A DNA stretch of 64,000 nt, from positions 1-64,000 of the IMG/VR virus record IMGVR_UViG_3300021197_001489. The stretch is one strand, 5' to 3'. The notes beneath the pieces were generated by a model, which saw nothing but the letters and a program-made list of their open reading frames with translations, was not told where the DNA came from and searched no databases. Both the position numbers and the translations under genes were made by a program. Shown here piece by piece: positions 12,809-64,000 of this stretch. Every line of letters begins with the position of its first letter. Position 1 is the first letter of the stretch.

Positions 12809-13849
12809 ATGGACCGTCTTGTTAGAAAGTTCACCGACGTTGTAGAAGAAGTTCGTATTCAGTTAGAAGCCGAGTTTGGCGTAACCCAAGAACAGTTGGA
12901 ATCATTTCGCAAAAGAGTTGATGCCAACGGACACAATTTTCCAATTGGCAGTAACATGGTAGACATTGACACACTGTACTTAGACTATGAAGTACAACGT
13001 GCCGCTATTGCCAAGCACATCTTACACATCATGAAAACCTACGATCCGCGGCTTTGCACACCTGCTAGTGCTTGTAAGGTTGATGGACAGGACTACACCA
13101 CACTGTATGATGGTCAACAGCGTAGTATTGCTAATGCATTGCTTGGCTTTACATATGTGCCCGCTACAGTGGTAGAAACCAAAGATGTAGCGTTTCCAAG
13201 TTATGCATTTGAGGAGCTAAACGAGACAGGTGTACAGCGTCTTGCACCAGGCGACTTGCATCGCAATGCACTTACACGTTATCGTTTGGGATCACGTGAA
13301 ATTAGAAACGTAAAAGCCCGTACACTGCAAGACCAGTTTGATTTTGTAGGCATTGACTTGCAGGACAAAGGTCAGAGAAAAAGTGCCAACTTGCGCGGTT
13401 CAAATGATTACTTCTTTAGCCACTTCAAGTATGCATACAAAGGCATTGACCTTGATCAAAGCGGCGGCGTACTAGAAGAAATACTGGATGCTATTATCTC
13501 TGTATTTCCGCTACAGGAAGAAGTTGATCAAGGTTGTTACATTGGACTGTACGAACTTGCAAGACTGGATACACGCCAAGAGCTCAATGGTGATTGGATG
13601 AAGCAGGTGCTTCGCAGTGCCAAGAAATACTGTAATTCAAGCGCAACTGTGCATGCAAAGGCCAAGATGCAAAACGCATATGTAAACCCAGGTGCTACTT
13701 GGAGTGCGCCCAGCAACATGAGCAACTTCTTGCGTGAAGTATACATCATGGATGGTGGTACACTGGATCTTCCATACCACGGAGAAGGTGCGCTTATGCA
13801 AGTTGCAACTAACCCTGCTCCGGGACTGATTGCCAAGGCAGCAGCATAA
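12809..13849 (+). CDS. ParB/DUF262-like DGQQR-motif protein
   Basis: DYEVQR and YDGQQR motifs, AFEELNE downstream. Confidence 0.6.
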   Translation: MDRLVRKFTDVVEEVRIQLEAEFGVTQEQLESFRKRVDANGHNFPIGSNMVDIDTLYLDYEVQRAAIAKHILHIMKTYDPRLCTPASACKVDGQDYTTLYDGQQRSIANALLGFTYVPATVVETKDVAFPSYAFEELNETGVQRLAPGDLHRNALTRYRLGSREIRNVKARTLQDQFDFVGIDLQDKGQRKSANLRGSNDYFFSHFKYAYKGIDLDQSGGVLEEILDAIISVFPLQEEVDQGCYIGLYELARLDTRQELNGDWMKQVLRSAKKYCNSSATVHAKAKMQNAYVNPGATWSAPSNMSNFLREVYIMDGGTLDLPYHGEGALMQVATNPAPGLIAKAAA

Positions 13850-14400
13850 TGTTGAAAGAAGCAATTGAAAACTTTCGCCAGCCAGTTTACACAAAAACTG
13901 CTCGTAGCACAGACACATACGCCAGCATTAACAATCGCTGTGCTACACAGATATCACGCCTGGTTGAAGAATACAACAGTGTAAAAAACGATCAGCAACT
14001 GTTGCGCGAAATACGCAACGAAATTGATTATCAGTTGCGTAGGTATCACAACTATGCTATTAAGGAAAACATTGGTGCGCACTACATTGAAGTAGGACTG
14101 GAAGGCAACGGCATCTTTGAACACATGATACCTGCTAGCACTGTGCGTGACCTTTGTATTGCAGGTATTATCAGTGCCAAGCAAGCACTGAATGTGCCGA
14201 CTTGCAGACTAAGCAAACAGCGTGATGATCTGTTGCGTGAAAAGGGTTGGGTAAGCAAGACACCAGACATCTACAATTTTTGGAAACGCTACAAATACTG
14301 CTTTGACACTGAAGGAGTGTTTACCACATGGGATGGACAGGCAGTAAACACTGATATGACACTGAATGACCACTTTGAGTATTTTGTTGTTAAACAGTAA
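13849..14400 (+). CDS. Putative His-Me/HNH-like nuclease (EHMIP)
   Basis: FEHMIP resembles the EHxxP motif of DUF1524/GmrD; stop-start coupled to the upstream gene. Confidence 0.4.
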   Translation: MLKEAIENFRQPVYTKTARSTDTYASINNRCATQISRLVEEYNSVKNDQQLLREIRNEIDYQLRRYHNYAIKENIGAHYIEVGLEGNGIFEHMIPASTVRDLCIAGIISAKQALNVPTCRLSKQRDDLLREKGWVSKTPDIYNFWKRYKYCFDTEGVFTTWDGQAVNTDMTLNDHFEYFVVKQ

Positions 14401-14418
14401 TACCATAAATACTGTATC

Positions 14419-17232
14419 ATGAAAGCAACCTGGTTCGAAAATAAAGAATTAATAACACTGTACACTGATGAACGCTATTTTGGCGCAGATGTGCCTGACA
14501 GTTACGCAAAGCGTCCTAGCAAGCCTGTGCCAGTAGACAGTTTGTTTGGCTACGAGCCGTCAAGCAAGATGGATGACATACATCACAAAGATGAAGTATT
14601 ACAAATTGCATTAAAAATGAAATCAGGTACCTGGGACGGCGACCCTATCGTGGTTCGCAAAGATCCTAAAGGCTATCAAGTGTTGGACGGACATCATAGA
14701 ATGCATGCAGCTCGCAAAGCAGGCTTGGACACACTTGATGCAGTCATAGTTGGTCACGAAGATATAGAATATTCAGATGAAGTCAAAGAACAAAAGGTAA
14801 ATGAAGATACCGAAGAGTTCATGCACGGTGATTGTCCTATATTTGCAATAGCACTTAGTCGACTAAGCGGACTTCCACTACAAGCAATGCTTGATTATAG
14901 CGATGAATTAGATAAAACTGTTCTTGTACATGCTTTTGTAGGGTATAAAAACGGACAAGTAATCGATGCAAGTGGTGTTCGCAGTATCGAAAGCATAGAA
15001 GATGACTATCCAGTTGAAGATGAACCGTATGTTACAGACATAAGTGAAAAAGAATTAATTGCATTAGGTTATGATGGAAACTGTCCTACAATAGATATTG
15101 CAAAACAACATGCAGAAAAAGTATTATCAACATTAAACGAAGCATCGGGTTACATACCAACTGCCGCACAAGCAAACGATCCTCGTTTTAAAACTGCACT
15201 CACTGTAGATGTGCGTCCGGGTGAAGATCAACGCAATATTTCAAAACTGGGTCTTGATCTAAACAAAGAACTGGTAAAGAAGACATCGCCAAAACGCAAA
15301 AACAAAAACTCAGTTCACACACTGCAAAATCTAGGACTAGCTGAAAGTCTTGCACTTGATTACCAAATAATGAAAGAAGATGATCTATTCGAAGTAAACA
15401 TGAGCCCTGGCGCATTGCGTGACTGGGCAAAAAGTGACGAAGCAAAAGGCATTGTTGCAGGCTTTGAAATGGAACTTATTTTTGCAGATACTGAAGGGGC
15501 TGATGGTGATTATGATGAAGCAATACCAGACTGGGACAGAGATGAAGGTCATAGAGGGCGCAGTTTTGATGCTGTAATTGACTGGTTTGACGATGACGAA
15601 TATGGTTATGCTATCAGCAACGATAATCCAGAACGTACCCGTGAACAAATGGATGAAGACTTCTTTGAAAAGGCCGACGAATGGGTAAACTCAGAGTTTG
15701 AAGAAGTAGCTGCTGAAAAAGTTCGTGAGATCATGGACGACGATGTTTGGGATGCAACCAAAGAAGAACGTTACGATGATACAGCAAACGAACTGTTTGA
15801 AAAAAGCTATGAAGCATTGGATGAAGAAGAACAAGAACAAGTTAGAGATACAGCATTTGACTACTATCTAAACGAAGTTGATGAGGCAGTCAGTGATCAG
15901 TACAATAATGAATACTGGGAACAGGCCATGGAAGACTTCCGTGAAGATCGCTGGGGCGACTATACCTGGGTACAATATTACAACGACGCTGATATAACTT
16001 ACATGAGTGATATAGCCGAACGCTTTGGAATAGCCTGGCCATTTTTAACTGGTGGCGGCGGCCTTGGAAATCGCAGTTGGGAAGAAATTGAACAGTCATT
16101 GATCAACGAACCGCTTGCTGACACAGACTTTTCCATAACCATTGGCGCTGGCTATCATGGCACTGCACGGCGCGACAACTTGTTTATTCTAGAACCTGAC
16201 AGCAGCCTGGAATCAGATGATGGCAGTGACACTGGCGTAGAAATTGTATCGCCGCCAATGCCATTGGGACTGGCAACAACCACACTGGAAAACATGCTAA
16301 TTTGGGCCAAAGACCCAGACACTGATGCTTACACAAACGGCAGCACAGGCTTGCACATGGGCATGAGTGTTCCAGGAACAGAGAATGTTGACTATGTGAA
16401 ACTGGTATTGTTCTCAGGTGACAAGTATATACTGGAAAAATACGGACGATCGGCCAACAGTTACACACCAAGTGCGCTTGACCAGTTACAGCGCAGAGGT
16501 CAAATGTTTGTGCAAAATCCAGAGATACTGAATGATATACTGGCAAAGATGCACGACAAATTAGACGATGCCGCCGAAGGCCTTATTCGCGGCAGCACAG
16601 GTGACATGAAGTACACTTCAATGAGCATAAAGAAAGGCTACATTGAATTCCGTTCACCAGGCGGAGACTACTTGTCAATGGACATTCCTGATGTTATCAA
16701 CACCATGCTGAGATTTGCCAGAGCTATGAAGATTGCCAGTGATCCAAATGCATACAGACAAGAGTACCAAAAGAAACTGTACAAATTAACAACCGCAGGC
16801 GGCGAAGGCATTGTTAATAAATTTAATAAACTGTTTGCAGATTATCAGACAGGAACACTCAGTGCCGAAAGTCTAAAGCGGCAATGGGCTAATTTAGTAT
16901 CAGATGAGAATACTACTATATTAAACAAACTAGATGATAAGCCTGATACCAAACGTGTCGGACTTGCAAAGCAAATACTGCAACCCAAGCCAAGTGTGGG
17001 TGCAGACAATGCAGCAGACAGTCAGCAGGTGCAACAGCGAGTAGAACCAAAGAACTATAATTACATGATGCCAATGGTTGACTTGGCGGGCGACGTGCAA
17101 AACACAGCGACAGGCACTGTAACAGCAACCAGCGAAGACGAAGCCAAAAGGCTAATCAATACTGAAGTAAGAGCCCGGAATCCAGACTTGCAACCTCTGT
17201 GGAGCCAAAGTAGAATAGAACAAGGCAGATAA
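14419..17232 (+). CDS. Multidomain late protein: ParB-like N-terminus plus amidoligase-2 (COOH-NH2 ligase) domain
   Basis: PIVVR...VLDGHHRMHAA; GFEMEL, EPDSSL, GVEIVSPP, TNGSTGLH, YIEFRSPGG; late box ATAAATA 14405. Confidence 0.7.
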   Translation: MKATWFENKELITLYTDERYFGADVPDSYAKRPSKPVPVDSLFGYEPSSKMDDIHHKDEVLQIALKMKSGTWDGDPIVVRKDPKGYQVLDGHHRMHAARKAGLDTLDAVIVGHEDIEYSDEVKEQKVNEDTEEFMHGDCPIFAIALSRLSGLPLQAMLDYSDELDKTVLVHAFVGYKNGQVIDASGVRSIESIEDDYPVEDEPYVTDISEKELIALGYDGNCPTIDIAKQHAEKVLSTLNEASGYIPTAAQANDPRFKTALTVDVRPGEDQRNISKLGLDLNKELVKKTSPKRKNKNSVHTLQNLGLAESLALDYQIMKEDDLFEVNMSPGALRDWAKSDEAKGIVAGFEMELIFADTEGADGDYDEAIPDWDRDEGHRGRSFDAVIDWFDDDEYGYAISNDNPERTREQMDEDFFEKADEWVNSEFEEVAAEKVREIMDDDVWDATKEERYDDTANELFEKSYEALDEEEQEQVRDTAFDYYLNEVDEAVSDQYNNEYWEQAMEDFREDRWGDYTWVQYYNDADITYMSDIAERFGIAWPFLTGGGGLGNRSWEEIEQSLINEPLADTDFSITIGAGYHGTARRDNLFILEPDSSLESDDGSDTGVEIVSPPMPLGLATTTLENMLIWAKDPDTDAYTNGSTGLHMGMSVPGTENVDYVKLVLFSGDKYILEKYGRSANSYTPSALDQLQRRGQMFVQNPEILNDILAKMHDKLDDAAEGLIRGSTGDMKYTSMSIKKGYIEFRSPGGDYLSMDIPDVINTMLRFARAMKIASDPNAYRQEYQKKLYKLTTAGGEGIVNKFNKLFADYQTGTLSAESLKRQWANLVSDENTTILNKLDDKPDTKRVGLAKQILQPKPSVGADNAADSQQVQQRVEPKNYNYMMPMVDLAGDVQNTATGTVTATSEDEAKRLINTEVRARNPDLQPLWSQSRIEQGR

Positions 17233-49408: not shown

Positions 49409-49484
49409 GCTGGTTTAGCTCAGTTGGTAGAGCAATGGTTTTGTAAACCATAGGTCGGGAGTTCGAGCCTCTCAACCAGCACCA
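49409..49484 (+). tRNA. tRNA-Thr (TGT)
   Basis: 76-nt cloverleaf, anticodon arm ATGGT-TTTGTAA-ACCAT, GTTCGAG T-loop, encoded CCA. Confidence 0.97.
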
Positions 49485-49595
49485 TTTTTTCTGTAAAAAT
49501 ATGCAGTAGTGGCGAGTTCGCTTTTTTTATTTAGAGCGTAACACTCTGATTATCTAACTTGTTCGAACTGCACTTACTGCATACACAATTACTTA

Positions 49596-49624
49596 TTGAC
49601 ATTTAATCGAAATAGTGCTATTAT
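49596..49624 (+). promoter_or_regulatory. sigma70-like promoter
   Basis: TTGACA-17 nt-TATTAT. Confidence 0.6.
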
Positions 49625-49657
49625 AAGTATAGTTTGAATATAGAGAGACTCAAATAA

Positions 49658-49993
49658 ATGGTACAAAAGTTTAATCAAGCAGGCATAGCATGTGTCTGTG
49701 CAGATGCAATGAATCAAGCAATAAGAAAAAGTATGGACCTTCCTCAGGACCAAATGATCAACATACCACCAGACTGGTTCGATGCAAATTGTGCTTGTAC
49801 TAAACTTGCACCAGGGTGGGGAGCAAAAGCAGACTACAATGCATATGATGCACATGCATATTATCAAAGTCTAGTAGAACTAAAAGATGTTTCTGCCAAA
49901 GTAGTAGAACAAATTGCAGGCAAAGAAGCATTAAAAATTTATTGGTCAGAAGTAGAAACTAGACAAAAAAGAATATGGCGCGATTACAAATAA
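49658..49993 (+). CDS. Hypothetical protein
   Basis: 111 aa with CVC/CAC motifs. Confidence 0.55.
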   Translation: MVQKFNQAGIACVCADAMNQAIRKSMDLPQDQMINIPPDWFDANCACTKLAPGWGAKADYNAYDAHAYYQSLVELKDVSAKVVEQIAGKEALKIYWSEVETRQKRIWRDYK

Positions 49994-50227
49994 ATGTTTT
50001 GGAATTTATTGGCAGTTTCCCTTGTGTTCTTTGTACTGATAATTGCAGCGTGTAGTCCAATTGTTGGCACCACTAGTTTAGTACACAGTATAGTAAAAGG
50101 CGATGCCTTTGGCACAGCAACTGGTATCATTGGTCAAATAATATCAACTGTTACGCCCGAAGAACACCCGCCTAAGCAAAAATCAAAAGCAGAGATTATG
50201 GAAGATTTGCGTAACGCTATGAACTAG
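49994..50227 (+). CDS. Small putative lipoprotein
   Basis: Hydrophobic signal ending IAAC. Confidence 0.5.
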   Translation: MFWNLLAVSLVFFVLIIAACSPIVGTTSLVHSIVKGDAFGTATGIIGQIISTVTPEEHPPKQKSKAEIMEDLRNAMN

Positions 50228-50258
50228 GCATATAAGTAAAAAAACAAAGGTAGATAAC

Positions 50259-50465
50259 ATGGCAGCTAAGAAAAACAAAGATTCAAAAGCCTGGATGATA
50301 CCAGAGGGTGAAAAACGTGAAAATGCAACATATCATTTTCTTGCCCGCAAAAGCATAAGCATGATCCGTGAAGGTAAGAAATTGCGTATGCGTAAGTATC
50401 ATCCTAAATTAAAACAACATGTTTGGTTTGTAGAAACAAAGATGCCAAGCCACAGCGCAAAATGA
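50259..50465 (+). CDS. rpmG: Ribosomal protein bL33-like
   Basis: KLRMRKYHPKLKQHVWFVETK matches the bL33 C-terminal KLxxxKYxPxxxxHVxFxExK pattern; N-terminus divergent. Confidence 0.7.
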   Translation: MAAKKNKDSKAWMIPEGEKRENATYHFLARKSISMIREGKKLRMRKYHPKLKQHVWFVETKMPSHSAK

Positions 50466-51145
50466 ATCAATACATATTTGATGTTGACGGCACACTAACG
50501 CCCAGCAGAGAAAAAATTGATCCTGAGTTTGGTGCATGGTTCATTGACTTTTGCAACAACCACAGTGTGTATCTGGTAACAGGCAGTGACCGTCTGAAGA
50601 CCATTGAACAGGTAGGCGAAACAGTGTACAACAGTTGTGTTCGTGTGTATCAGTGTTCAGGAAATGAAGTATTTGAGAAAAACAAACGTATTCGTGTTAG
50701 TGATTGGCAGTTACCCGATGCAGCACAAACCTGGCTACAAGAACAGTTGGACAAAAGTAAATTTTATAGAAAGACTGGCACCCACATTGAACACAGGACT
50801 GGCATGGTTAACTTTAGCATTGTTGGTCGACAAGCCAACATGGAAGAACGAGCAATGTATGTTCAATGGGATGAACACAAACTGGAACGCATGATAATTG
50901 CTGCACAGTTTAACTTTCGCTTTCAAGATCTGCAGGCAACTATTGGTGGCGACACTGGCATTGATATCTATGCTAAAGGCAAAGACAAAGCACAGATTGT
51001 TAAAGACTTTGACCTAACAGATACGCTGTGGTTCTTTGGTGATGCTATGCGTCCAAGCGGCAACGATTACTCACTGAGCAAAGTTGTAAATCATGCAGTG
51101 CCAGTGAAGGATTGGCAAGATACGTGGCGTATATTAAGTGAATAG
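50462..51145 (+). CDS. HAD-IIB phosphomannomutase-like phosphatase
   Basis: FDVDGTLT, VTGSD, IEHRTGMVNFSIVGR, FGDAMRPSGNDY. Confidence 0.8.
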   Translation: MNQYIFDVDGTLTPSREKIDPEFGAWFIDFCNNHSVYLVTGSDRLKTIEQVGETVYNSCVRVYQCSGNEVFEKNKRIRVSDWQLPDAAQTWLQEQLDKSKFYRKTGTHIEHRTGMVNFSIVGRQANMEERAMYVQWDEHKLERMIIAAQFNFRFQDLQATIGGDTGIDIYAKGKDKAQIVKDFDLTDTLWFFGDAMRPSGNDYSLSKVVNHAVPVKDWQDTWRILSE

Positions 51146-51596
51146 TATGAATATTACTGTTACAGGCACTAGTAAAGGATTAGGTAAAAGTATTGCAGAC
51201 TATTGTGAACAATCACACACAGTGGTCAGGTTTGGTCGAGAATATGACTTGCGTGATTACTCCGTGCGGCAAAAAATTATACAACAAGAAAGTGATATTC
51301 TTATTAGTGTAGCAAAACCTAATTTTTCACAAACGGAATTATTGTATGAGTGGTATAATGTACATGGTACTAGTAAGCGGGTGATTAATATTGGAAGTGC
51401 GGTTGTACATAAAGAATTTTGGGGAGATGATATTCACATGATGAGGTATCATACACAAAAACGCAGTCTCGCACATGCTGTGGCTCAAATTGATCATCCA
51501 AACATCTCTATTATAAACCCAGAACACCTCTACAACAAAAATGCATTTGATTATGCTGTATTGGAAAAATGGTGCAAGGAGAATATTTTTATATGA
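51138..51596 (+). CDS. Short-chain dehydrogenase-like protein (short)
   Basis: TGTSKGLG, INIGS, YHTQK (YxxxK). Confidence 0.7.
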   Translation: MNSMNITVTGTSKGLGKSIADYCEQSHTVVRFGREYDLRDYSVRQKIIQQESDILISVAKPNFSQTELLYEWYNVHGTSKRVINIGSAVVHKEFWGDDIHMMRYHTQKRSLAHAVAQIDHPNISIINPEHLYNKNAFDYAVLEKWCKENIFI

Positions 51597-52738
51597 AACC
51601 AAAAGATTTATACGAAAATAGAGTATTTTGCTCAGCACCATGGAACAATTTATATATCAATCCAGATGGAAAAATTCTAACCTGCAGTATAGGAAAATGC
51701 AATGTAGGAAATCTTAGTGATAACAGGATACAGGATATTGTCCAGGACAATGATGTCTTAAAAGAAATTCAACAAAGTATGATAGACGGCAAGCGCCATA
51801 AAAATTGTGGTACTTGCTATAAGCTAGAAGATAGTGGAGTAAGTTACAGTTTAAGAAAGCACTACAAAAGCAAAATTAGTAATTTTAATAATTTAGATCA
51901 GTATGATATTGCTTCAGGCAGTTTAGATGTGACCAGTTTTGATCTAAGATACGACAACACTTGTCAAAATGCATGTGTTTACTGTGGTCCGGCACTAAGC
52001 AGTAGATGGGAAAAAGAACTGGGTGTAACAGTTCCAAAGCCAAGTCTTGGCAATATAGATAATACCAAGAAGTATGTATCAGAAAATCTTGCGAATCTCA
52101 AAGAAATATACCTAGCAGGTGGAGAACCTTTGGTTACCAAAGACTTTGCTGTTATATTAGAAGAGCTGCACAAAGTAAATCCAAATTGCAAAATTAGAAT
52201 TAACAGTAATATTAAAAATATTAATACTCCGGTGTACGAATTAAGCAAAAAGTTTCGTAATCTAAGATATACACTGAGTGCAGAAGCAGTTGAACAGCAA
52301 TTCGAGTACATAAGATATCCGCAAACATGGAGTAGTTTTCAAAAAAATGTTAAACAAGTTATTGATGAAGTCCCTTCATATAACTTTAACATGGCATTAA
52401 ATGTTCTTAACATGTATGGATTATTTGATTGCATAGACTATCTTAGAAGTATAGGAGCACACGATAATAGTTTAATAATTACGCATGTAAACAATCCATC
52501 TTGGTGTAATATTAATAATCTGTCAGATGAATTATTAGATGAATTTGTTGAACGTTGTAACCTGTACATGTCACAAACAGATCCAAAATACAGTCTGTAT
52601 TCAGCATTGGAAGGTTGTGTAAATTTTGTTCGGGTATCTTTCGATAAAAATATCAATGATACAAGATTAAATTTAGAAACATTAGATATAAGAAGAAACT
52701 TAAATAGTAAAAATATTTTTCCATATATTTACAAATAG
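51593..52738 (+). CDS. Radical SAM protein with N-terminal SPASM/twitch-like domain
   Basis: CQNACVYC, AGGEP; N-terminal CSAPW...C...CGTC. Confidence 0.85.
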   Translation: MKPKDLYENRVFCSAPWNNLYINPDGKILTCSIGKCNVGNLSDNRIQDIVQDNDVLKEIQQSMIDGKRHKNCGTCYKLEDSGVSYSLRKHYKSKISNFNNLDQYDIASGSLDVTSFDLRYDNTCQNACVYCGPALSSRWEKELGVTVPKPSLGNIDNTKKYVSENLANLKEIYLAGGEPLVTKDFAVILEELHKVNPNCKIRINSNIKNINTPVYELSKKFRNLRYTLSAEAVEQQFEYIRYPQTWSSFQKNVKQVIDEVPSYNFNMALNVLNMYGLFDCIDYLRSIGAHDNSLIITHVNNPSWCNINNLSDELLDEFVERCNLYMSQTDPKYSLYSALEGCVNFVRVSFDKNINDTRLNLETLDIRRNLNSKNIFPYIYK

Positions 52739-52745
52739 GTATAAA

Positions 52746-52937
52746 ATGTTAAGTAAAAAATGTAAACAGCATCTAGCAGATGTAAATGAAACAGGACTAG
52801 AGCACATGATAGTAGCACTAAAAGTTGCAGTAAAATTGCAATTGTTAGTGCCTGCATTAATTATACACAGCGTTGCTCCACGTTTCTTTACAACTACTGC
52901 CAGTGATACAATGAAGAATATATTAAAAAATAGATAA
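52746..52937 (+). CDS. Small hypothetical protein (DUF6356-like)
   Basis: HL...ET.LEH...IHS..P.FF..TAS pattern. Confidence 0.5.
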   Translation: MLSKKCKQHLADVNETGLEHMIVALKVAVKLQLLVPALIIHSVAPRFFTTTASDTMKNILKNR

Positions 52938-52958
52938 TGTTGGCCGACTGTTAAACAA

Positions 52959-53225
52959 ATGAGCAAATATGATGAAAAACGTATGAAAGAAATCCAAACC
53001 AGATTGGTAAAACACATACAGCAAAACCTTAAAGAAGATGAAGACTATGTGCTGCTTGCGACCATGCTTTTAAAACACAGTATAGTGCTTTATAGAACGT
53101 TCCTAACAGATCAACAGATAGTTAAAATGTTAGCCCGTGCAGGAGAAACAATCAATGACGCCGCGCACGACATTGACAAGTTTATCGACACAGACGAAAC
53201 TGGCAATCCTCCCACAGTACATTAA
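52959..53225 (+). CDS. Hypothetical protein
   Basis: 88-aa helical ORF. Confidence 0.5.
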   Translation: MSKYDEKRMKEIQTRLVKHIQQNLKEDEDYVLLATMLLKHSIVLYRTFLTDQQIVKMLARAGETINDAAHDIDKFIDTDETGNPPTVH

Positions 53226-53235
53226 AAAAAATTGG

Positions 53236-53264
53236 TTGACACATAGCACAATATATTATATACT
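53236..53264 (+). promoter_or_regulatory. sigma70-like promoter for tRNA-Arg
   Basis: TTGACA-17 nt-TATACT, 14 nt before the tRNA. Confidence 0.8.
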
Positions 53265-53278
53265 AATAAGACAATCGC

Positions 53279-53355
53279 GGTTCCATAGCTCAGCTGGATA
53301 GAGCAACTGCCTTCTAAGCAGTAGGTCGGGAGTTCGAATCTTCCTGGAATCGCCA
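53279..53355 (+). tRNA. tRNA-Arg (TCT)
   Basis: 77-nt cloverleaf, ACTGC-CTTCTAA-GCAGT anticodon arm, encoded CCA. Confidence 0.97.
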
Positions 53356-53376
53356 ACTTTAGCAAGGAGTAAGACT

Positions 53377-53613
53377 ATGGAAGTATTACTATTATTTGGA
53401 GCATTAGCAGCAGGTCATCATTACTTGACTCAAGATGAACCAGTTGCACCAGTTGCACCACAAGCTGTACACAGCGCACAATCCATTGGAGAAATTGTAA
53501 ACTTTGGTCACGACGATGTTAGTCTTGCAAGCATTGACTGGAGCAAGGCAGGAAATTCCATTGTTGGCGATTCATCCGAGAATGGAATTCAGTGGATCTT
53601 TATCACAAACTAA
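53377..53613 (+). CDS. Small hypothetical protein
   Basis: AAGGAG RBS; hydrophobic N-terminus. Confidence 0.55.
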   Translation: MEVLLLFGALAAGHHYLTQDEPVAPVAPQAVHSAQSIGEIVNFGHDDVSLASIDWSKAGNSIVGDSSENGIQWIFITN

Positions 53614-53629
53614 TAGAAGGAATAGTAAA

Positions 53630-53854
53630 ATGAAAGTATCAGTAGACGTTTATACCAAAGACATCGAAGCAGGCTTGGCAGCATTTAAACTTGCACTAGA
53701 CAGTGGTGCAACAGATGCACAATTGCGCAGCAACGAAGATTGGGAAACAAAGAAATTCGAAAGTCTCAATCTAATGTTTGAAGCAGACAACAAGAGTGAA
53801 GCTATTAGCAGCCTAGACAACGGTCCGTTCAAACGCGATCAATCAGATCTTTAA
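53630..53854 (+). CDS. Small hypothetical protein
   Basis: AAGGA RBS; MKVSVDVY... Confidence 0.55.
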   Translation: MKVSVDVYTKDIEAGLAAFKLALDSGATDAQLRSNEDWETKKFESLNLMFEADNKSEAISSLDNGPFKRDQSDL

Positions 53855-53998
53855 ATGAAAAAGATCTCAAGTCTAGTTCATAATCCGTTATTTGTTGGAG
53901 CCCTTGGTTTGACAAACCTATTTGCCAGTCAAGGCAACATATGGATGATAATTACAGGATTGGTATTGATTGTAATCGCCGCAATGGATGCATTCTAA
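53855..53998 (+). CDS. Small two-TM membrane peptide (47 aa, not in ORF track)
   Basis: ATG abuts the previous TAA; hydrophobic. Confidence 0.5.
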   Translation: MKKISSLVHNPLFVGALGLTNLFASQGNIWMIITGLVLIVIAAMDAF

Positions 53999-54000
53999 TT

Positions 54001-54074
54001 AGGGGATAAGTGTTACGGTAGCACGACAGGCTCCAACCCTGTAAGCGTGGGTTCGACTCCTACATCCTCTGCCA
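54001..54074 (+). tRNA. tRNA-Trp (CCA)
   Basis: 74-nt cloverleaf, ACAGG-CTCCAAC-CCTGT, G73 plus CCA. Confidence 0.9.
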
Positions 54075-55495: not shown

Positions 55496-56830
55496 ATGTT
55501 TGAATTACTTTCTGCTTTTGTTGTAGGATTAGGTTTAGGTGTTGTGTCTGGAATTGTTCCAGGTCTCAATGTGTTTGTAAGTATCTTACTGGTATTTCCA
55601 CTGTTGATAACTTGGGAACCAACCAGCATTATGTTTATGTATATCACATTGGCCAGTGTGCATCAGTACTTTGGCAGTGTAAGTGCCACTGTGTTTGCTA
55701 TACCTGGCACCAGCACCAGTTTACCTGCACTACACGAAGGGCATGGTATGTTTCAAAGTGGCAGAGGCAGCGAAGCAATTATGACAGCCGCAATTGGCAG
55801 TTTCTTTGCTAGTTTTTTTGCTATTGTTCTAATACATTTCATGTTGCCTTATCTCAGCATTTTCTATCAAATTTTTAACACACACATACAGGCATTGCTG
55901 TTAACAGTTGCCGCAGTAACAATCATAGTGTTCGCTGACAACAAAATTTGGATTAGTCTATTGCTTTGGATAGTAGGAAATACACTGGCCATGGTAGGCC
56001 TACACGAATACTATGGCGGCATTACATTTATGACTTTTGGAATTCCGGCACTGTACACAGGTATTGATCTATTACCTGTGATGATTTCACTGTATGTGGT
56101 TCCTGTGTTTTTGAGAGCAAGTAAGTCAGGCGGCCGTATTGAATTTAAAGGTGTAAGCATGGGAGGCTATGTTGATGCCGCGCGCCGCATGTACAAACAA
56201 ATGAAAATGACACTTTTGCGTAGCAGTATTATTGGAGCATTAGTTGGCTTCATACCTGGCATCAGTTGGGGGTTGAGTACAATGCTTGCTTACAACTCCG
56301 AACTGGGTATACGCAAACGTAAAAAACTATACAATACACAGGGAGATGCAAACTGTTTGGTGGCTGCAGAAAGCAGTAACAACGCAGGTGTGTACACCAG
56401 TATGGTGCCTATGCTGTTTGCAGGTATACCTATCACTGCAAGTACTGCACTCATATACAACATATTCATGTTTAGAGGCATCAACCCAACGCTGCCATTC
56501 TTTGAAAGTTTATACGAAATAACCTTAGTTGGGTTTGGCATAAGCAGTGTTATAGGATTGCTTATAGCAGGCAAATATGTTAATTTTCTCAAGTTTTTAA
56601 GTGGACTGGACATACGCAAATTTTACACTGTGATGTTTTTGCTGCTGGTTGTGATTTGCTACTTTGTGGCAGAACAATACTATGCAGGATTTGACAACAT
56701 GATGATGTTGGTTTGTCTGTTACCTTTTGGGTACCTACTTAGAAATTACAACACAATGCCATTGATATATGGTTTTGTGTTGCAAGATATTTTTATAGAA
56801 AGTGTTTATAGACTAACATTTTTCTATTAA
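55496..56830 (+). CDS. Tripartite tricarboxylate transporter TctA-like permease
   Basis: SGIVPGL, IPGTSTS, GALVGFIPG, AAESSNNA, GIPITAS motifs; about 12 TM. Confidence 0.75.
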   Translation: MFELLSAFVVGLGLGVVSGIVPGLNVFVSILLVFPLLITWEPTSIMFMYITLASVHQYFGSVSATVFAIPGTSTSLPALHEGHGMFQSGRGSEAIMTAAIGSFFASFFAIVLIHFMLPYLSIFYQIFNTHIQALLLTVAAVTIIVFADNKIWISLLLWIVGNTLAMVGLHEYYGGITFMTFGIPALYTGIDLLPVMISLYVVPVFLRASKSGGRIEFKGVSMGGYVDAARRMYKQMKMTLLRSSIIGALVGFIPGISWGLSTMLAYNSELGIRKRKKLYNTQGDANCLVAAESSNNAGVYTSMVPMLFAGIPITASTALIYNIFMFRGINPTLPFFESLYEITLVGFGISSVIGLLIAGKYVNFLKFLSGLDIRKFYTVMFLLLVVICYFVAEQYYAGFDNMMMLVCLLPFGYLLRNYNTMPLIYGFVLQDIFIESVYRLTFFY

Positions 56831-60272: not shown

Positions 60273-60722
60273 ATGAGTATGTTTTTAAGGTGGTGGCTAC
60301 TGTTCTGCACCAGTTGTGCGGCTATGTTTACCGCCTATAGTTTTGGGTTTGTTGATGCACTGATTGCAAAAGATGTCACGCGACTTAGTTTTGCTATACT
60401 TGCAGTGTTCTTTTTAAGTAGCATGTATGTTGGATGGATGACCTATAAACGAAGCAAAGGTGCAGTAGTGAAAGTTGGTGTAAATGTTGGATGGTTTATC
60501 ACTGAACTACTGCTTGCCTTGGGCATGATTGGAACAGTTATTGGATTTATCTTGATGCTGGGCGGAAGTTTCGAAAGTTTAAATCTTTCTGATACTGGCA
60601 GCGTAAAGACTGCACTAACTGCTATGGCAATAGGTATGAGTACTGCACTGTATACTACACTCGTAGGAATGGTGTGCAGCCAAATCCTCAAGGTGCAGCT
60701 GGTCAATGTCGAATCCAAATAA
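60273..60722 (+). CDS. MotA/TolQ/ExbB proton-channel family protein
   Basis: LGMIGTVIG and GMSTALYTTLVG TM motifs. Confidence 0.8.
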   Translation: MSMFLRWWLLFCTSCAAMFTAYSFGFVDALIAKDVTRLSFAILAVFFLSSMYVGWMTYKRSKGAVVKVGVNVGWFITELLLALGMIGTVIGFILMLGGSFESLNLSDTGSVKTALTAMAIGMSTALYTTLVGMVCSQILKVQLVNVESK

Positions 60723-61921: not shown

Positions 61922-62410
61922 ATGCCAACATTTGTATACATGACTGCATGCGATGGATGTGGACATTGCGTCGACATTTGTCCAAGTGACATCATGCACA
62001 TTGATCCAGTAACAAGACGAGCAGTAAACATAGAACCAAACTTTTGCTGGGAGTGCTATTCATGCGTAAAAGCATGTCCACAAAATGCAATTGACGACAG
62101 AGGCTACAGTGACTTTGCGCCTATGAATCACAAGGTCAGAGTATTACGAGAACCAGAAAAAGGCGTTATCAGTTGGCGACTCAAATTCAGAGACGGCAGA
62201 GAAAAACACTTTGAATCACCTATTCGCACAACACCTTGGGGCAGTATACAATGCGCCAGTGAGTACGACGTGCCAGATGCAACACTAAATGACTCACAGC
62301 AACTAGCACATGAACCAGAATACTTACTGGCAGATGGCGGGTTGCGCATGATTAGTAAGAATAAATTTGTTAAATACGAGTACACAGGAGACACACATGC
62401 CACCACGTAA
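61922..62410 (+). CDS. aprB: Adenylylsulfate reductase beta subunit (2x[4Fe-4S] ferredoxin)
   Basis: MPTFVYMT.CDGCGHCVDICPSDIMH...NIEP..CWECYSCVKACP...RGYSDFAP; IRTTPWG. Confidence 0.92.
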   Translation: MPTFVYMTACDGCGHCVDICPSDIMHIDPVTRRAVNIEPNFCWECYSCVKACPQNAIDDRGYSDFAPMNHKVRVLREPEKGVISWRLKFRDGREKHFESPIRTTPWGSIQCASEYDVPDATLNDSQQLAHEPEYLLADGGLRMISKNKFVKYEYTGDTHATT

Positions 62411-63500
62411 TCATAATAACTGGACAGCAACACCCAAGGTTGAATACATCAGCAGCGAATGCTACAATAACTTTGAAGTGTTTGAACAAGAGCAAGAGCA
62501 CATCTTTTCAAAAGTGTGGGTACCAATGTGCCACAAGTCAGAGCTTTCGGAAGCAGGTAGGTTTAGAACAACCAAGATTGCTGGTCAAAATGTTATAGCA
62601 ATTAACAATGGCGACACTATTAAAACATACTTAAATCCTGGAAAGTTCAGTACTCCAGCTGGATCAATGACACGAGTTCAATTCTTAATGGATGACTATA
62701 CTCCATTGCATACTGAAGTCAAACATGGTGGAATGGTATGGACAACGTTGGATTCTAATCCTACACAAAGCGTAGATGAGTGGACAGCAGGTGCATTTGA
62801 TTGTATTGCTGATGCCATTGATACCGAAGAGATGGAAGTATTCCATTACCATAAAGCTGTTATAGATACCAATTATAAACTGTGGCATGATACCAACAGT
62901 GAATTCTATCACGACTTCATGCATTATTTTAATAGAGTGAGTGGCTTCAATGATGAATATTTCGCTAGAAAAAATATCCCTTTTGATAATGGTCACGTTA
63001 ATGTGTCTAGCTTTACTGTTAACTATGAAGAGTATGACGGATTTGAAGATCGCGGGGACTTATCTTTTCCCAATTTGCCGCCCAACCAGTGGTACATGGT
63101 TGACCTCTTCCCAGGATTCAATTTTAACCTCCGCGGGAGTGCATATCGTTCAGACTCGGTGACTCCACTAGGTCCTAACAAAGTTCTTATCGAATTTAGA
63201 GGTTATGGATTACTCAATGATACTCCTGAAGAAAGACAAACACGCATTAAGCACCACAATAGTATATGGGGACCTTTCGGCAGAAACTTGCACGAAGACC
63301 TTATTGGCGTGGCTGGTCAAGGCACTACAATGCGTGAAGGTACAGAATCAAGAAACATACTGCACGGCAGACATGAAAATTCTACAATACATGATGAAGT
63401 TGGAATGAGACATTATTATGAAGCATGGGGTAACATGTTGGGTGTAAGTCCAATGAATCCACTACAAGGACAACTACAAGATGTTAGTAAGGCTGCGTAA
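62397..63500 (+). CDS. Ring-hydroxylating oxygenase alpha subunit, MsmA-like, lacking the Rieske cluster motif
   Basis: FHYHKAV..TNYKLWHDTNSEFYHD.MH, WGPFGRNLHED, TIHDE.GMRH; no CxH...CxxH. Confidence 0.8.
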   Translation: MPPRNHNNWTATPKVEYISSECYNNFEVFEQEQEHIFSKVWVPMCHKSELSEAGRFRTTKIAGQNVIAINNGDTIKTYLNPGKFSTPAGSMTRVQFLMDDYTPLHTEVKHGGMVWTTLDSNPTQSVDEWTAGAFDCIADAIDTEEMEVFHYHKAVIDTNYKLWHDTNSEFYHDFMHYFNRVSGFNDEYFARKNIPFDNGHVNVSSFTVNYEEYDGFEDRGDLSFPNLPPNQWYMVDLFPGFNFNLRGSAYRSDSVTPLGPNKVLIEFRGYGLLNDTPEERQTRIKHHNSIWGPFGRNLHEDLIGVAGQGTTMREGTESRNILHGRHENSTIHDEVGMRHYYEAWGNMLGVSPMNPLQGQLQDVSKAA

Positions 63501-63578: not shown

Positions 63579-63800
63579 ATGAAAGAATTCATGCTTGTTA
63601 TCTCTATGTGGGGGAACACTGGTTCCGAATGGGAATACATCGGTAATCAAATGGTATTGCAACAACCAATGACTGAAGCCCAATGCGAGTACATGGTTGA
63701 CAAAGATATGTGGACTCAATACATTGAAAATGAATACTATATGATGGTTGCACAGTGTTATCCTAAACACTGTGCTGGTCAAGAAACCTGTGAAAAATAG
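63579..63800 (+). CDS. Small protein with hydrophobic N-terminus and Cys residues
   Basis: MKEFMLVISMWG...QC...QCYP..C. Confidence 0.6.
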   Translation: MKEFMLVISMWGNTGSEWEYIGNQMVLQQPMTEAQCEYMVDKDMWTQYIENEYYMMVAQCYPKHCAGQETCEK

Positions 63801-63801
63801 T

Positions 63802-63903
63802 TGGCTTTGGGGGGAGGATTCGAACCTCCACGCTTAAATATATTGCAACACATTTAAACAGACCGTAAACAGCGGCCCACGTCTACCATTTCGTCACCCC
63901 AAA
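63802..63903 (-). tRNA. Atypical type II (long variable arm) tRNA, anticodon GTT
   Basis: Acceptor TTTGGGG/CCCCAAA, G73-CCA, D arm ACG-AAATGGTAGA-CGT, anticodon arm GGCCG-CTGTTTA-CGGTC, 31-nt variable hairpin, T arm GGAGG-TTCGAAT-CCTCC; 102 nt. Confidence 0.8.
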
Positions 63904-63910
63904 CTGGTTG

Positions 63911-64000
63911 TTATGCGGCTAGTGCAACCTCTTGCTTTTTATCCATTGCCGCAATCATTCTTGTTAAGCCAATACCGCCGCCTACTCTTGGGAAGAAGTC
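63911..64000 (-). CDS. C-terminal 29 aa of a class IIb aaRS-like / AsnA-like protein (truncated by window edge)
   Basis: Reads DFFPRVGGGIGLTRMIAAMDKKQEVALAA*; PRxGGGIGxxR is class II motif 3. Confidence 0.7.
   Translation of the reverse strand, partial: DFFPRVGGGIGLTRMIAAMDKKQEVALAA

Follow-up and report, generated by a model that had tools for sequence, protein, structure and literature searches.

The window analyzed here is a stretch of 64,000 nucleotides of a marine phage, positions 1 to 64,000 of the IMG/VR virus record IMGVR_UViG_3300021197_001489. At its end, on the minus strand, window positions 63802–63903 encode a 102-nt tRNA(GUU). The tRNA begins 7 nt after the stop codon (63911–63913) of a gene ending in DFFPRVGGGIGLTRMIAAMDKKQEVALAA, the last 29 codons and stop of which occupy 63911–64000 on the minus strand. 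This part of the gene carries motif 3 of a class IIb synthetase; the gene runs off the window end and continues to contig position 64759, and in the parent contig it encodes a protein of 282 aa. The 7-nt spacer (63904–63910) leaves no room for a separate promoter, and no promoter-like site was found. On the other side, a convergent 73-aa ORF (63579–63800, plus strand) has its stop 1 nt from the tRNA 3′ end. This ORF marks the boundary of the plus-strand gene block and is not part of the cassette, as it is not conserved next to the cassette elsewhere.

Anatomy and covariation of the tRNA

The tRNA has a 7-bp acceptor stem with U1-A72, followed by G73 and an encoded CCA (63804–63802), a 3-bp D stem with a 10-nt D loop, an anticodon stem GGCCG/CGGUC with the loop C-U-G-U-U-U-A, and a T arm GGAGG-UUCGAAU-CCUCC (63813–63829). 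The anticodon, G34-U35-U36, is at 63868–63870, and the next base, position 37 (63867), is U. The variable arm (63832–63859, tRNA positions 45–72) is a 12-bp AU-rich stem with a UGCA loop, flanked by invariant U44 and by G47-U48. The cloverleaf is recovered as the minimum free energy fold. The sequence-only reading, which had described a long-arm tRNA(GUU) directly behind an AsnRS/AsnA-like gene, was correct in everything that it observed.

Standard tools miss this tRNA because its variable region is 31 nt long. ARAGORN in default mode, with relaxed score thresholds, and in tmRNA and mitochondrial modes did not find it, and neither did Rfam at the gathering score or even at E ≤ 10. ARAGORN calls it only with an invented 5-nt "intron," which we regard as a workaround and not biology. 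However, a covariance model of the family scores it at 105 bits, E = 2e-23.

A lack of covariation among homologs had been named in advance as grounds for abandoning the idea, and the homologs were examined for this. Across 56 distinct homologs, all 1120 stem cells of the alignment pair and 15 of 20 pairs show changes on both sides, while slid controls pair at only 36.5–62.9%. The base of the variable arm also covaries, with pairs 1–3 paired in 56/56, 56/56 (six pair types), and 54/56 sequences. U1-A72, G73, and G34-U35-U36 are invariant in 56/56, whereas position 37 is U in 43, A in 10, and C in 3. The perfect pairing and extensive compensatory change, including in the long arm, exclude a pseudogene or a tRNA disrupted by a chance insertion.

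The tRNA therefore carries the Asn identity set, GUU and G73, which is complete and transplantable in E. coli (PMC9976931), together with the GatCAB determinant U1-A72 (PMC2811023), but it does not have the body of a canonical bacterial tRNA-Asn. That body is type I, with a 4–5-nt variable loop and a 4-bp D stem, and has a purine at position 37 (A37, the site of t6A). The other three tRNAs of the window all have A37, and the pyrimidine at this position is specific to this tRNA in the genome. The body is instead like that of bacterial tRNA-Leu, with a 3-bp D stem, a D loop of 10–12 nt, A15-U48, G18-G19, and a variable arm with 1 unpaired nt on the 5′ side and 2 on the 3′ side, a register that is constant in all 56 homologs. 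This architecture matches a real tRNA-Leu used for comparison. It differs from tRNA-Leu in having G73 rather than A73, which is crucial for E. coli LeuRS, in U1-A72, the GUU anticodon, and the pyrimidine at 37, and in an arm expanded to 9–12 bp in many lineages. A tRNA-Ser would have G73 and a long arm in the Ser-specific orientation. G73 and the long arm are present, but the core is Leu-type and the sequence does not reveal the orientation of the arm, so this comparison does not settle the matter either way. Variable-region lengths in the family are bimodal, 13–17 nt or 28–37 nt, and the arm stem ranges from 3 to 12 bp.

The linked enzyme and its relatives

An anticodon-binding domain in the upstream protein had been proposed as a point to examine, and none was found. 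The 282-aa protein hits only PF00152, has no N-terminal OB fold, and its structural model is all catalytic core; two rows from annotated-record loci were left out of the alignment used for the model. Profile and fold searches place it nearest to AsnRS, and the nearest structures are real AsnRS rather than AS-AR, AsnA, or EpmA. Its amino acid loop, Q-T-G-Q-M-W-L-E, matches Q-S-S-Q-L-Y-L-E of AsnRS and not Q-S-P-Q-L-Y-K-Q of AspRS. The motif 2 and motif 3 arginines and the Mg/ATP acidic residues are at least 95% conserved. The protein is acidic (median pI 4.7, net charge about −20) and compact, without an RNA-binding appendage, and its rigid, Pro-rich motif-2 loop is the same length as in AsnRS to within one residue but lacks the basic residues found there.

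The protein does not belong to any of the curated families that were compared. It scores 27.4 bits against the 342.6-bit cut-off of TIGR00457 (AsnRS), and the whole OB-fold anticodon-binding domain of canonical AsnRS (e.g., P. horikoshii 1x54, human NARS1 8h53/8tc8, and B. malayi 2xti) is missing. It scores 22 bits against the 389-bit cut-off of NF005055, the NCBIfam model of the archaeal asparagine synthetase AS-AR, an AsnRS paralog (PDB 3p8t, 3reu, and 1nnh), and has no hit to PF03590 (AsnA, AS-A). The sequence relation to 3p8t, E = 7e-7, is weak compared with 1e-15 to AsnRS. It is, like AsnA and AS-AR, a stand-alone class IIb core without a tRNA-binding domain, but neither of those enzymes is linked to a tRNA gene, and the present family occurs in CPR, Bacteroidota, and marine phages. 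The score for EpmA/GenX/PoxA, the LysRS-like EF-P lysyl transferase, is 14.6 bits against the 286.9-bit cut-off of TIGR00462, and the pocket is of Asn type, not Lys type. GluQRS (YadB) is a class I enzyme.

The gene and tRNA occur together in 78 of 80 related viral loci, and a tRNA-only search gave 112 of 112 judgeable loci with the gene upstream. The cassette is present in hundreds of ocean phage contigs and arose once, and the spacer is 4–10 nt in relatives. The gene can lose the tRNA, but the tRNA was never found without the gene. This asymmetry looked at first like evidence that the tRNA depends on the enzyme, but it is equally well explained by dependence of the tRNA on the promoter of the gene, so we do not count it for either of the main models discussed below. 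RNA-library contigs bridge the gene/tRNA junction. No third gene is conserved with the cassette, as the commonest neighbor family is in 15 of 81 loci. The AMP-binding enzyme and phosphopantetheinyl transferase genes that lie 2.6–5 kb away in this contig are not conserved with the cassette, and were rejected as parts of the system.

The same cassette is present in the Prochlorococcus phages P-SSM2, P-SSM5, and P-SSM7, where it is annotated as "tRNA ligase" (T4-GC 194) plus "tRNA-Asn." The protein is 64% identical, and an 85–88-nt tRNA(GUU) lies about 8 nt after the stop, as was checked in P-SSM2 and P-SSM7. Those copies have a short, 5-bp arm, so tRNA finders detect them. The 2010 comparative paper lists the gene only in a table, without discussion (PMC3037559), and literature searches on the cyanophage pair, on host AsnRS status, and on CPR asparagine metabolism found nothing relevant. 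A megablast search of the last 6 kb of the window against cultured phages gave no match, and a viral scan with a 42%-identity relative found nothing; the full protein alignment was too diverse to provide a pattern for the genome scan.

The enzyme also stands alone in many CPR and Bacteroidota genomes, on contigs up to 1.5 Mb, and in a huge phage, without a private tRNA. The CPR and Bacteroidota copies are 55–62% identical. About 100 positions are at least 95% conserved across phage and cell copies, and only one conservative site is class-specific, so the coupled phage enzymes show no sequence specialization for the tRNA beyond this residue. In 10 CPR loci, the gene follows a tRNA dihydrouridine synthase (Dus) gene, a weak hint of a tRNA-related role. 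The occurrence of asnS, aspS type, gatCAB, asnA, and asnB was not tabulated for complete CPR genomes that carry the gene, such as the 716-kb chromosome OZ246403.1, or for Prochlorococcus NATL1A/2A.

Proposed function of the cassette

We suggest, with a probability of about 0.42, that the locus is a self-contained, mobile, co-transcribed two-part phage module devoted to asparagine supply. In this view, the AsnRS-derived core activates aspartate with ATP and amidates it with ammonia to make free asparagine, which would be a third, independent recruitment of a class IIb core as an asparagine synthetase, after bacterial AsnA and archaeal AS-AR. The tRNA would be processed from the 3′ end of the same transcript, charged by host AsnRS or by ND-AspRS plus GatCAB, and would decode AAY codons. 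The analysis itself demonstrates that the tRNA is real and under selection, that its linkage to the gene is conserved, that the enzyme belongs to the AsnRS lineage with all catalytic motifs intact and no anticodon-binding domain, and that undiverged stand-alone orthologs exist in cells; the chemistry of the enzyme, the identity of the charging enzyme, and co-transcription are our inferences.

There is precedent for this chemistry, since class IIb-like cores without a tRNA-binding domain transfer to ammonia instead of tRNA (AS-A; PMC9437257). Given the stand-alone orthologs, the chemistry does not depend on the private tRNA, and the acidity of the protein and its nonbasic motif-2 loop agree with this reading. 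Acceptor pairs 2–4 of the tRNA covary freely while the motif-2 loop of the enzyme stays fixed. The arm length switches at least 7 times on the tree under a constant enzyme, and for this reason we rejected the long arm as a recognition handle. The tRNA keeps exactly the identity set that host AsnRS or ND-AspRS and GatCAB read (GUU, G73, and U1-A72), which weakens the case for a private charging pair, and the invariant GUU implies codon reading or anticodon-reading host enzymes. However, neither asparagine synthesis nor charging of the tRNA was assayed, and whether the hosts have an AsnRS able to use free Asn was not established. The model also does not explain the type II body, the lineage-specific 9–12-bp arm expansion, or the pyrimidine at position 37, since an ordinary type I tRNA-Asn would serve as well; we treat these as tolerated history or as possible nuclease evasion. 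GatCAB reads the D-loop and sits near the variable loop (PMC2811023), so this tRNA may be a poor GatCAB substrate. Furthermore, we know of no other case in which a phage metabolic gene is welded to its cognate tRNA across this much divergence, and such coupling is what a charging pair would predict.

The main rival, which we consider unlikely but not excluded, is that the core is a minimal synthetase that aminoacylates the adjacent tRNA(GUU), most likely with Asn, recognizing it through U1-A72, G73, and CCA and perhaps the type II core. The phage would then bring its own enzyme–substrate pair for AAY decoding, and in cells the same enzyme would act on the ordinary tRNA-Asn. The tight linkage in both directions, the single origin of the cassette, the match between pocket type and anticodon, the intact catalytic motifs, the AsnRS-like length of the motif-2 loop, and the Dus neighbors are consistent with this, and the odd tRNA architecture could make it a poor substrate for host enzymes. 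Moreover, CysRS* lacks its anticodon-binding domain and is genetically coupled to a dedicated tRNA, SelC* (PMC9437257); ProRSx/tRNA-ProA is a further synthetase paralog coupled to an unusual tRNA. Those pairs are bacterial and their charging has been shown, whereas here the enzyme also lives without any private tRNA in cells, and the anticodon matches the pocket type, so no recoding is implied. Against a charging pair are the undiverged stand-alone orthologs, the acidic, compact protein, the labile arm, and the constancy of only U1-A72 and G73 in the acceptor stem. Bacterial tRNA-Gln shares those marks, a point not tested here, so specificity would be poor, and no known class IIb core charges tRNA without its anticodon-binding domain. 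The interpretation in the sequence-only reading was thus only partly supported: the tRNA(GUU) with its type II body and pyrimidine 37, the AsnRS/AsnA-like core, and the conserved unit hold, but the private charging pair is not supported, or is weakened. An Asn synthetase without tRNA binding had been named beforehand as the outcome that would refute the pair, and it is now the slightly favored reading, although it is not shown.

The remaining possibilities are all improbable in our view. The enzyme might act on the tRNA without being a synthetase, either by amidating Asp already attached to tRNA(GUU), a GatCAB-independent route in which U37 (no t6A) lets host AspRS load Asp, or by adding an amino acid to a modified base such as Q34, as GluQRS, also a synthetase core without an anticodon-binding domain, does on tRNA-Asp, a tRNA with a GUN anticodon. 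The AsnRS/AS-like pocket, the almost invariant U33-G34-U35, and the report that t6A37 blocks aspartylation of tRNA-Asn in yeast are compatible with this, but there is no direct evidence, and the acidity, the lack of an RNA-binding domain, and the cellular orthologs are problems for any tRNA-binding model. The sequence-only reading had also raised nuclease resistance or a decoy role, mistranslation, and a non-ribosomal aminoacyl donor, none of which has been tested. Evasion of, or a decoy for, a host tRNA-Asn-directed anticodon nuclease or another tRNA-targeting defense would fit the variation at positions 32, 37, and 38 beside an almost invariant 33–36, and phage tRNAs with anticodon-loop changes that escape host nucleases have been described in other systems. 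However, no nuclease is identified, the obligate linkage to an Asn-type enzyme, then a separate asset, is not explained, and the idea is compatible with the two leading models rather than an alternative to them. Charging by host SerRS, with insertion of Ser at Asn codons, could be imagined for a Leu-type core with G73, as A73-to-G73 changes can switch Leu identity to Ser identity in some contexts (PMC9976931). Yet the invariant GUU plus G73 is the full Asn identity set, acceptor pairs 1–3 are not Ser-like and they vary, proteome-wide Asn-to-Ser substitution is unlikely to be kept in hundreds of phage lineages, and the linked enzyme is given no role. A donor for non-ribosomal chemistry, for which only the nearby AMP-binding enzyme and phosphopantetheinyl transferase genes speak, is largely refuted by the absence of a conserved third gene, and a donor recognized only by a private enzyme would not need an invariant anticodon.

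A type II tRNA with asparagine identity marks and a pyrimidine at position 37 breaks two near-universal rules, that long arms belong to Leu, Ser, Tyr, and Sec and that ANN decoders have A37, yet it is under strong purifying selection in hundreds of ocean phage contigs. Because standard tRNA finders miss the long-arm form, phage tRNA censuses undercount it. The enzyme family to which it is welded is uncharacterized and labeled only "amino acid–tRNA ligase-related protein," although it is abundant in marine viromes (more than 8000 clusters at 90% identity) and also present in CPR bacteria. Nobody has tested what the cassette does, though cultured systems exist in P-SSM2 and P-SSM7 on Prochlorococcus NATL1A. 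Whichever of the two leading readings is right, something new follows. If the protein is a natural minimal asparaginyl-tRNA synthetase, it would be the first class IIb core shown to charge tRNA on its own, without reading the anticodon, forming in marine myoviruses a self-contained and ready-made compact orthogonal pair with a type II tRNA-Asn, and in CPR bacteria it may be the working AsnRS or an accessory one. If it is instead an asparagine synthetase, it would be a third independent conversion of a synthetase core to this function, used by phages as an auxiliary metabolic gene together with its cognate decoder.

Anatomy and conservation of the tRNA(GUU)

The parent contig, of which the window is the first 64 kb, is 316 kb long (GCA_900491975.1, UEXM01000006.1) and belongs to a large tailed phage with a T4-type family B DNA polymerase, a Lon-like protease, and an exonuclease. 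The tRNA and its gene lie on the minus strand and converge on the plus-strand gene block. Positions 63802-63903 read as a 102-nt cloverleaf. The acceptor stem is UUUGGGG/CCCCAAA, so the first pair is U1-A72, and it is followed by G73 and an encoded CCA. U8 and G9 precede a 3-bp D stem with a 10-nt loop, and the anticodon stem, GGCCG/CGGUC, carries the loop C-U-G-U-U-U-A, giving the anticodon GUU and a U at position 37. The variable region of 31 nt consists of U, a 12-bp AU-rich stem with a UGCA loop, and then G-U, and the T arm is GGAGG-UUCGAAU-CCUCC. A 7-nt spacer separates tRNA position 1 from the stop codon of a gene whose last residues are ...FFPRVGGGIGLTRMIAAMDKKQEVALAA, while the 3' end of the tRNA lies 1 nt from the stop of a convergent 73-aa ORF. 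Thus, the observation made in the sequence-only reading, of a long-arm tRNA(GUU) directly behind an AsnRS/AsnA-like gene, is confirmed, and every element that it listed is present.

ARAGORN in default mode and Rfam, both at the gathering score and at E<=10, report nothing at this site. When introns are allowed, ARAGORN calls tRNA-Asn(GTT), but only by inventing a 5-nt intron. The cause is the 31-nt variable region, since natural relatives with regions of 13-17 nt are called tRNA-Asn directly. Absence of covariation in homologs had been set in advance as a result that would count against the sequence-only reading. We delimited the element in relatives by anchoring on the T loop and the acceptor stem, which gave 56 distinct sequences, including those of phages P-SSM2 and P-SSM7. 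On the four core stems, 100% of 1120 cells form standard pairs, and 15 of the 20 pairs have changes on both sides (171 cells), whereas partners slid by 1-3 columns pair at only 36.5-62.9%. The base of the variable arm, registered by fixed offsets rather than by alignment, pairs in 56/56, 56/56 (six different pair types), and 54/56 sequences. A covariance model built from the family scores the window copy at 105 bits, E = 2e-23. The covariation excludes a pseudogene.

U1-A72, G73, U8, G9, A14, A15, the G18-G19 equivalents, G34-U35-U36, U44, U48, and the T-loop core are invariant in all 56 sequences. By contrast, acceptor pairs 2-5, D-stem pairs 10:25 and 11:24, every anticodon-stem pair, and the T-stem pairs vary, all by compensatory change. 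Position 32 (C in 48, U in 8), position 37 (U in 43, A in 10, C in 3, and never G), and position 38 (A in 45, C in 11) are also variable. The pyrimidine at 37 is specific to this tRNA, since the window's tRNA-Thr, tRNA-Arg, and tRNA-Trp all have A37. These three ordinary type I tRNAs (Thr-UGU, Arg-UCU, and Trp-CCA) form a cluster at 49409-54074 on the plus strand, about 10 kb away from the tRNA(GUU), which is kept apart from it on the opposite strand.

The body is that of a type II tRNA-Leu. A genuine tRNA-Leu from a bacterial locus has the same 3-bp GCG/CGC D stem, an 11-nt D loop, and the same variable-arm register, with 1 unpaired nt on the 5' side and 2 on the 3' side. A15-U48 and G18-G19 are the E. 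coli Leu core determinants (PMC9976931). What is not Leu-like is exactly the Asn set, namely G73 instead of A73, U1-A72, and GUU. In E. coli, the anticodon plus G73 is a transplantable Asn identity (PMC9976931), and U1-A72 is the bacterial GatCAB determinant (PMC2811023).

The length of the variable region is bimodal, with 13-17 nt and a 3-5-bp stem in 20 sequences, and 28-37 nt and a stem of up to 12 bp in 36 sequences. The long forms share a conserved distal sequence of the type ...AUGUACUGCAAUAUAUUUA... In the distal half of the long arms, for example at 63837-63853 (minus strand), a conserved sequence of the type AUGUACUGCAAUAUAU is seen even between tRNAs whose other stems have diverged. 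This suggests one insertion that spread or was repeatedly lost, or a binding site. On the protein tree, arm length changes at least 7 times, so the 12-bp arm of the window copy is a lineage-level expansion of an already type II arm, not a fixed feature of the system.

The upstream protein and its linkage to the tRNA

Examination of the complete upstream gene for an anticodon-binding domain had been named beforehand as a check on the sequence-only reading. In the parent contig, the gene encodes 282 aa. A Pfam search finds only PF00152, the class II D/K/N core, at E = 8e-17 over residues 16-278, and there is no room for an OB-fold anticodon-binding domain. All NCBIfam equivalogs fall far below their cut-offs: ND-AspRS at 31 bits against 353, AsnRS at 27 against 343, archaeal Asn synthetase A at 22 against 389, and EpmA at 14.6 against 287. 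The AlphaFold model is confident (pLDDT 94.4, pTM 0.91). A family profile hits AsnRS at E about 1e-15 and archaeal AspRS at 4e-13, but AS-AR only at 7e-7. The amino-acid-binding loop, P-Q-T-G-Q-M-W-L-E, aligns with T-Q-S-S-Q-L-Y-L-E of AsnRS, where AspRS has A-Q-S-P-Q-L-Y-K-Q. The family therefore has Leu-Glu where AspRS has Lys-Gln, which is an Asn-type pocket. The motif 2 arginine (R88), the motif 3 arginine (R267), D197, and R211 are near-invariant.

The protein is very common in marine data, with more than 8000 clusters at 90% identity that match it and at least 597 IMG/VR stretches that encode a relative. Among clusters at 50% identity, only 668 reach E<=1e-3, and most full-length hits are stand-alone cores of about 265-345 aa, with a few longer proteins of up to 661 aa. 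The family is bounded and far from canonical synthetases. In cultured phages, it occurs in the Prochlorococcus myoviruses P-SSM2, P-SSM5, and P-SSM7 (64% identity, annotated 'tRNA ligase') and in three huge-phage assemblies (44-47%). P-SSM7 annotates an 85-nt tRNA-Asn 8 nt after the gene. The tRNA-Leu(UAA) of this phage, just upstream of the cassette (2371-2443 of L090, the P-SSM7 locus), is only 73 nt, with a 5-nt variable loop, so that it lacks the long arm which the neighbouring tRNA-Asn has, and the usual assignment of long arms is swapped in P-SSM7. P-SSM2 has an 88-nt tRNA-Asn. The GenBank record NC_006883.2 places it (PSSM2_199) at 164094-164179, inside other genes, but ARAGORN and the covariance model find it right after the 'tRNA ligase' gene (3313-3400 of L089, the P-SSM2 locus; record positions about 162082-162169), about 2 kb upstream of the annotated position. 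The annotation coordinates look stale.

Of 80 viral loci with the gene, 77 have the full tRNA right after it and one has it cut by the contig end, while two (L048 and L051) lack it. The spacer is 4-10 nt, except in three loci (L037, L039, and L040), in which the tRNA lies 161 nt after the point where the reading frame of the gene stops. Either there is an insertion between them or the C-terminus differs. In the reverse direction, a pattern made only from the tRNA found 120 viral loci, of which 112 have the gene immediately upstream, 8 have too little upstream sequence to judge, and none has the tRNA without the gene. The linkage persists at 55% protein identity, in locus L092, which has an 80-nt tRNA(GUU).

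No third gene travels with the pair. The commonest neighbour family is present in 15 of 81 loci, on either side and in either orientation. It is the Rieske-like protein, which in the window is encoded by a ring-hydroxylating-oxygenase-alpha-like gene (367 aa) that follows a ferredoxin/APS-reductase-C-like gene (162 aa) at 61922-63500 (plus strand). Just outside the window, 2.6-5 kb from the cassette (contig 67.4-69.8 kb; 13802-16180 of locus L001), an AMP-binding (adenylating) enzyme, two small ORFs (72 and 85 aa), and a phosphopantetheinyl transferase (ACPS) form a possible carrier-protein loading set, but it is not conserved with the cassette in other loci. A TctA-family transporter-like gene and a MotA/ExbB-like gene (55496-56830 and 60273-60722, plus strand) are unusual membrane-protein cargo for a phage genome.

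Orthologues in cellular genomes

A scan of species-representative genomes found 264 relatives. The copies at 75-80% identity, together with L099 (63%) and L121 (59%), sit on phage-like contigs binned into MAGs, and all of these carry the tRNA. The contigs with the phage-type cassette (L094-L097, L099, and L121) are deposited in MAGs of Legionellales, Flavobacteriaceae, Bacteroidetes, Neomarinimicrobiota, Poseidoniia, and Chloroflexota. Two have the same lengths as IMG/VR viral contigs (27770 and 28041 nt), and they are probably phage contigs mis-binned into cellular MAGs. The many copies at 55-62% identity are in Patescibacteria/CPR (Saccharibacteria, Paceibacterota, Uhrbacteria, Nomurabacteria, Peribacteria, and Gracilibacteria), on contigs of up to 0.7-1.5 Mb, and in Bacteroidota (Weeksellaceae, Aureispira, and Chitinophagales). 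None of these has the tRNA. ARAGORN and the covariance model find only ordinary, non-adjacent tRNAs there, and the genes are followed by terminators or housekeeping genes. A huge-phage copy (47%) and a bacterial copy (33%, next to lpxB, rpmB, and rpmG) also lack it. NCBI names these proteins only 'amino acid--tRNA ligase-related protein', 'tRNA ligase' or, spuriously, 'transposase'. Their neighbours are housekeeping genes. A tRNA dihydrouridine synthase (Dus) lies upstream in 10 loci, and the others are DNA polymerase III gamma/tau, ClpP, trigger factor, PEPCK, and pyrD.

On a tree of 72 rows, all tRNA-linked genes fall in one clade (30 rows, 27 with the tRNA and 3 without; SH-aLRT 83), and the cellular copies lie outside it. 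The label needs 3 changes on the tree, against 21.8 on average for shuffled labels. So the tRNA was attached once, on the branch to the marine phage clade, and was lost a few times. In one loss, L098 (2359-2385; MAG-labelled contig NZDU01000035.1), a remnant reading UCCGGGG-U-CCCCCGGA-G-CCA lies directly after a 63%-identical copy of the enzyme gene. This is an acceptor-stem-only hairpin that keeps G73 and CCA, and it may be a deletion remnant or a natural microhelix. We consider it most telling that about 100 positions are at least 95% conserved across both phage and cellular enzymes, while a single conservative site (T11 versus S) separates the two groups. The job of the enzyme is therefore the same with and without the private tRNA.

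Expression and possible function

Lack of expression was another outcome that had been specified as counting against the sequence-only reading. Contigs assembled from marine metatranscriptome libraries cover the tRNA and the 3' end of the gene. Two pieces match exactly (63859-63921 and 63892-63997), and the first bridges the junction. This fits co-transcription, although DNA carry-over cannot be excluded. The adjacent 73-aa ORF (63579-63783) has zero depth in all four runs, and no promoter-like site lies between the gene and the tRNA.

The existence of the tRNA and its attachment to the gene are findings of this analysis, whereas the function of the pair is inferred from them, and two readings are close. 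In the one that we tentatively prefer, with a probability of about 0.42, the locus is an asparagine-supply module in which the enzyme would be an AsnRS-derived asparagine synthetase, and the tRNA would be a co-transcribed decoder charged by host enzymes. There is precedent that class IIb cores without a tRNA-binding domain transfer to ammonia (PMC9437257), and the cellular orthologues are stand-alone and undiverged. The protein is acidic and compact, with a median pI of 4.7 and a net charge of about -20, and its rigid E-P-N-x-x-P-G-R-H motif-2 loop lacks the basic residues of AsnRS. Moreover, the acceptor stem drifts freely beyond pair 1 under an unchanged enzyme, the arm is labile, and the tRNA retains the complete host-readable Asn identity set. 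In the other reading, which we consider less likely, the two are a private charging pair, and the core charges the tRNA directly. The coupling of an Asn-type pocket with a GUU tRNA is unusually tight and long-lived, the family is closer to true AsnRS than to AS-AR, there is the precedent of CysRS*/SelC* (PMC9437257), and Dus is a neighbour in CPR loci. The proposal in the sequence-only reading of a private synthetase-tRNA pair is only partly supported. That the tRNA is never found without the gene does not separate the two readings, since a tRNA 4-10 nt behind a gene, with no promoter of its own, depends on the transcription of that gene. Neither reading explains the type II body or U37, for which nuclease evasion, aspartylation made possible by the lack of t6A37 (PMC9976931), or plain historical accident (a remoulded tRNA-Leu) are all possible.

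The short-arm cassette has been present in the GenBank annotations of P-SSM2 and P-SSM7 since 2005-2010. The only mention of the gene that we found in the literature is a table row, 'T4-GC 194, tRNA ligase' (PMC3037559), and full-text searches gave no analysis of the cassette, though most subscription journals were not covered, so that this absence is not proof. Phage tRNAs, synthetase-derived amino-acid synthetases, and coupled synthetase-tRNA pairs are each already known. What is new is a tRNA with Asn identity marks on a type II body and with a pyrimidine at 37, obligately attached to an ABD-less enzyme of the AsnRS lineage that also lives alone in CPR bacteria.
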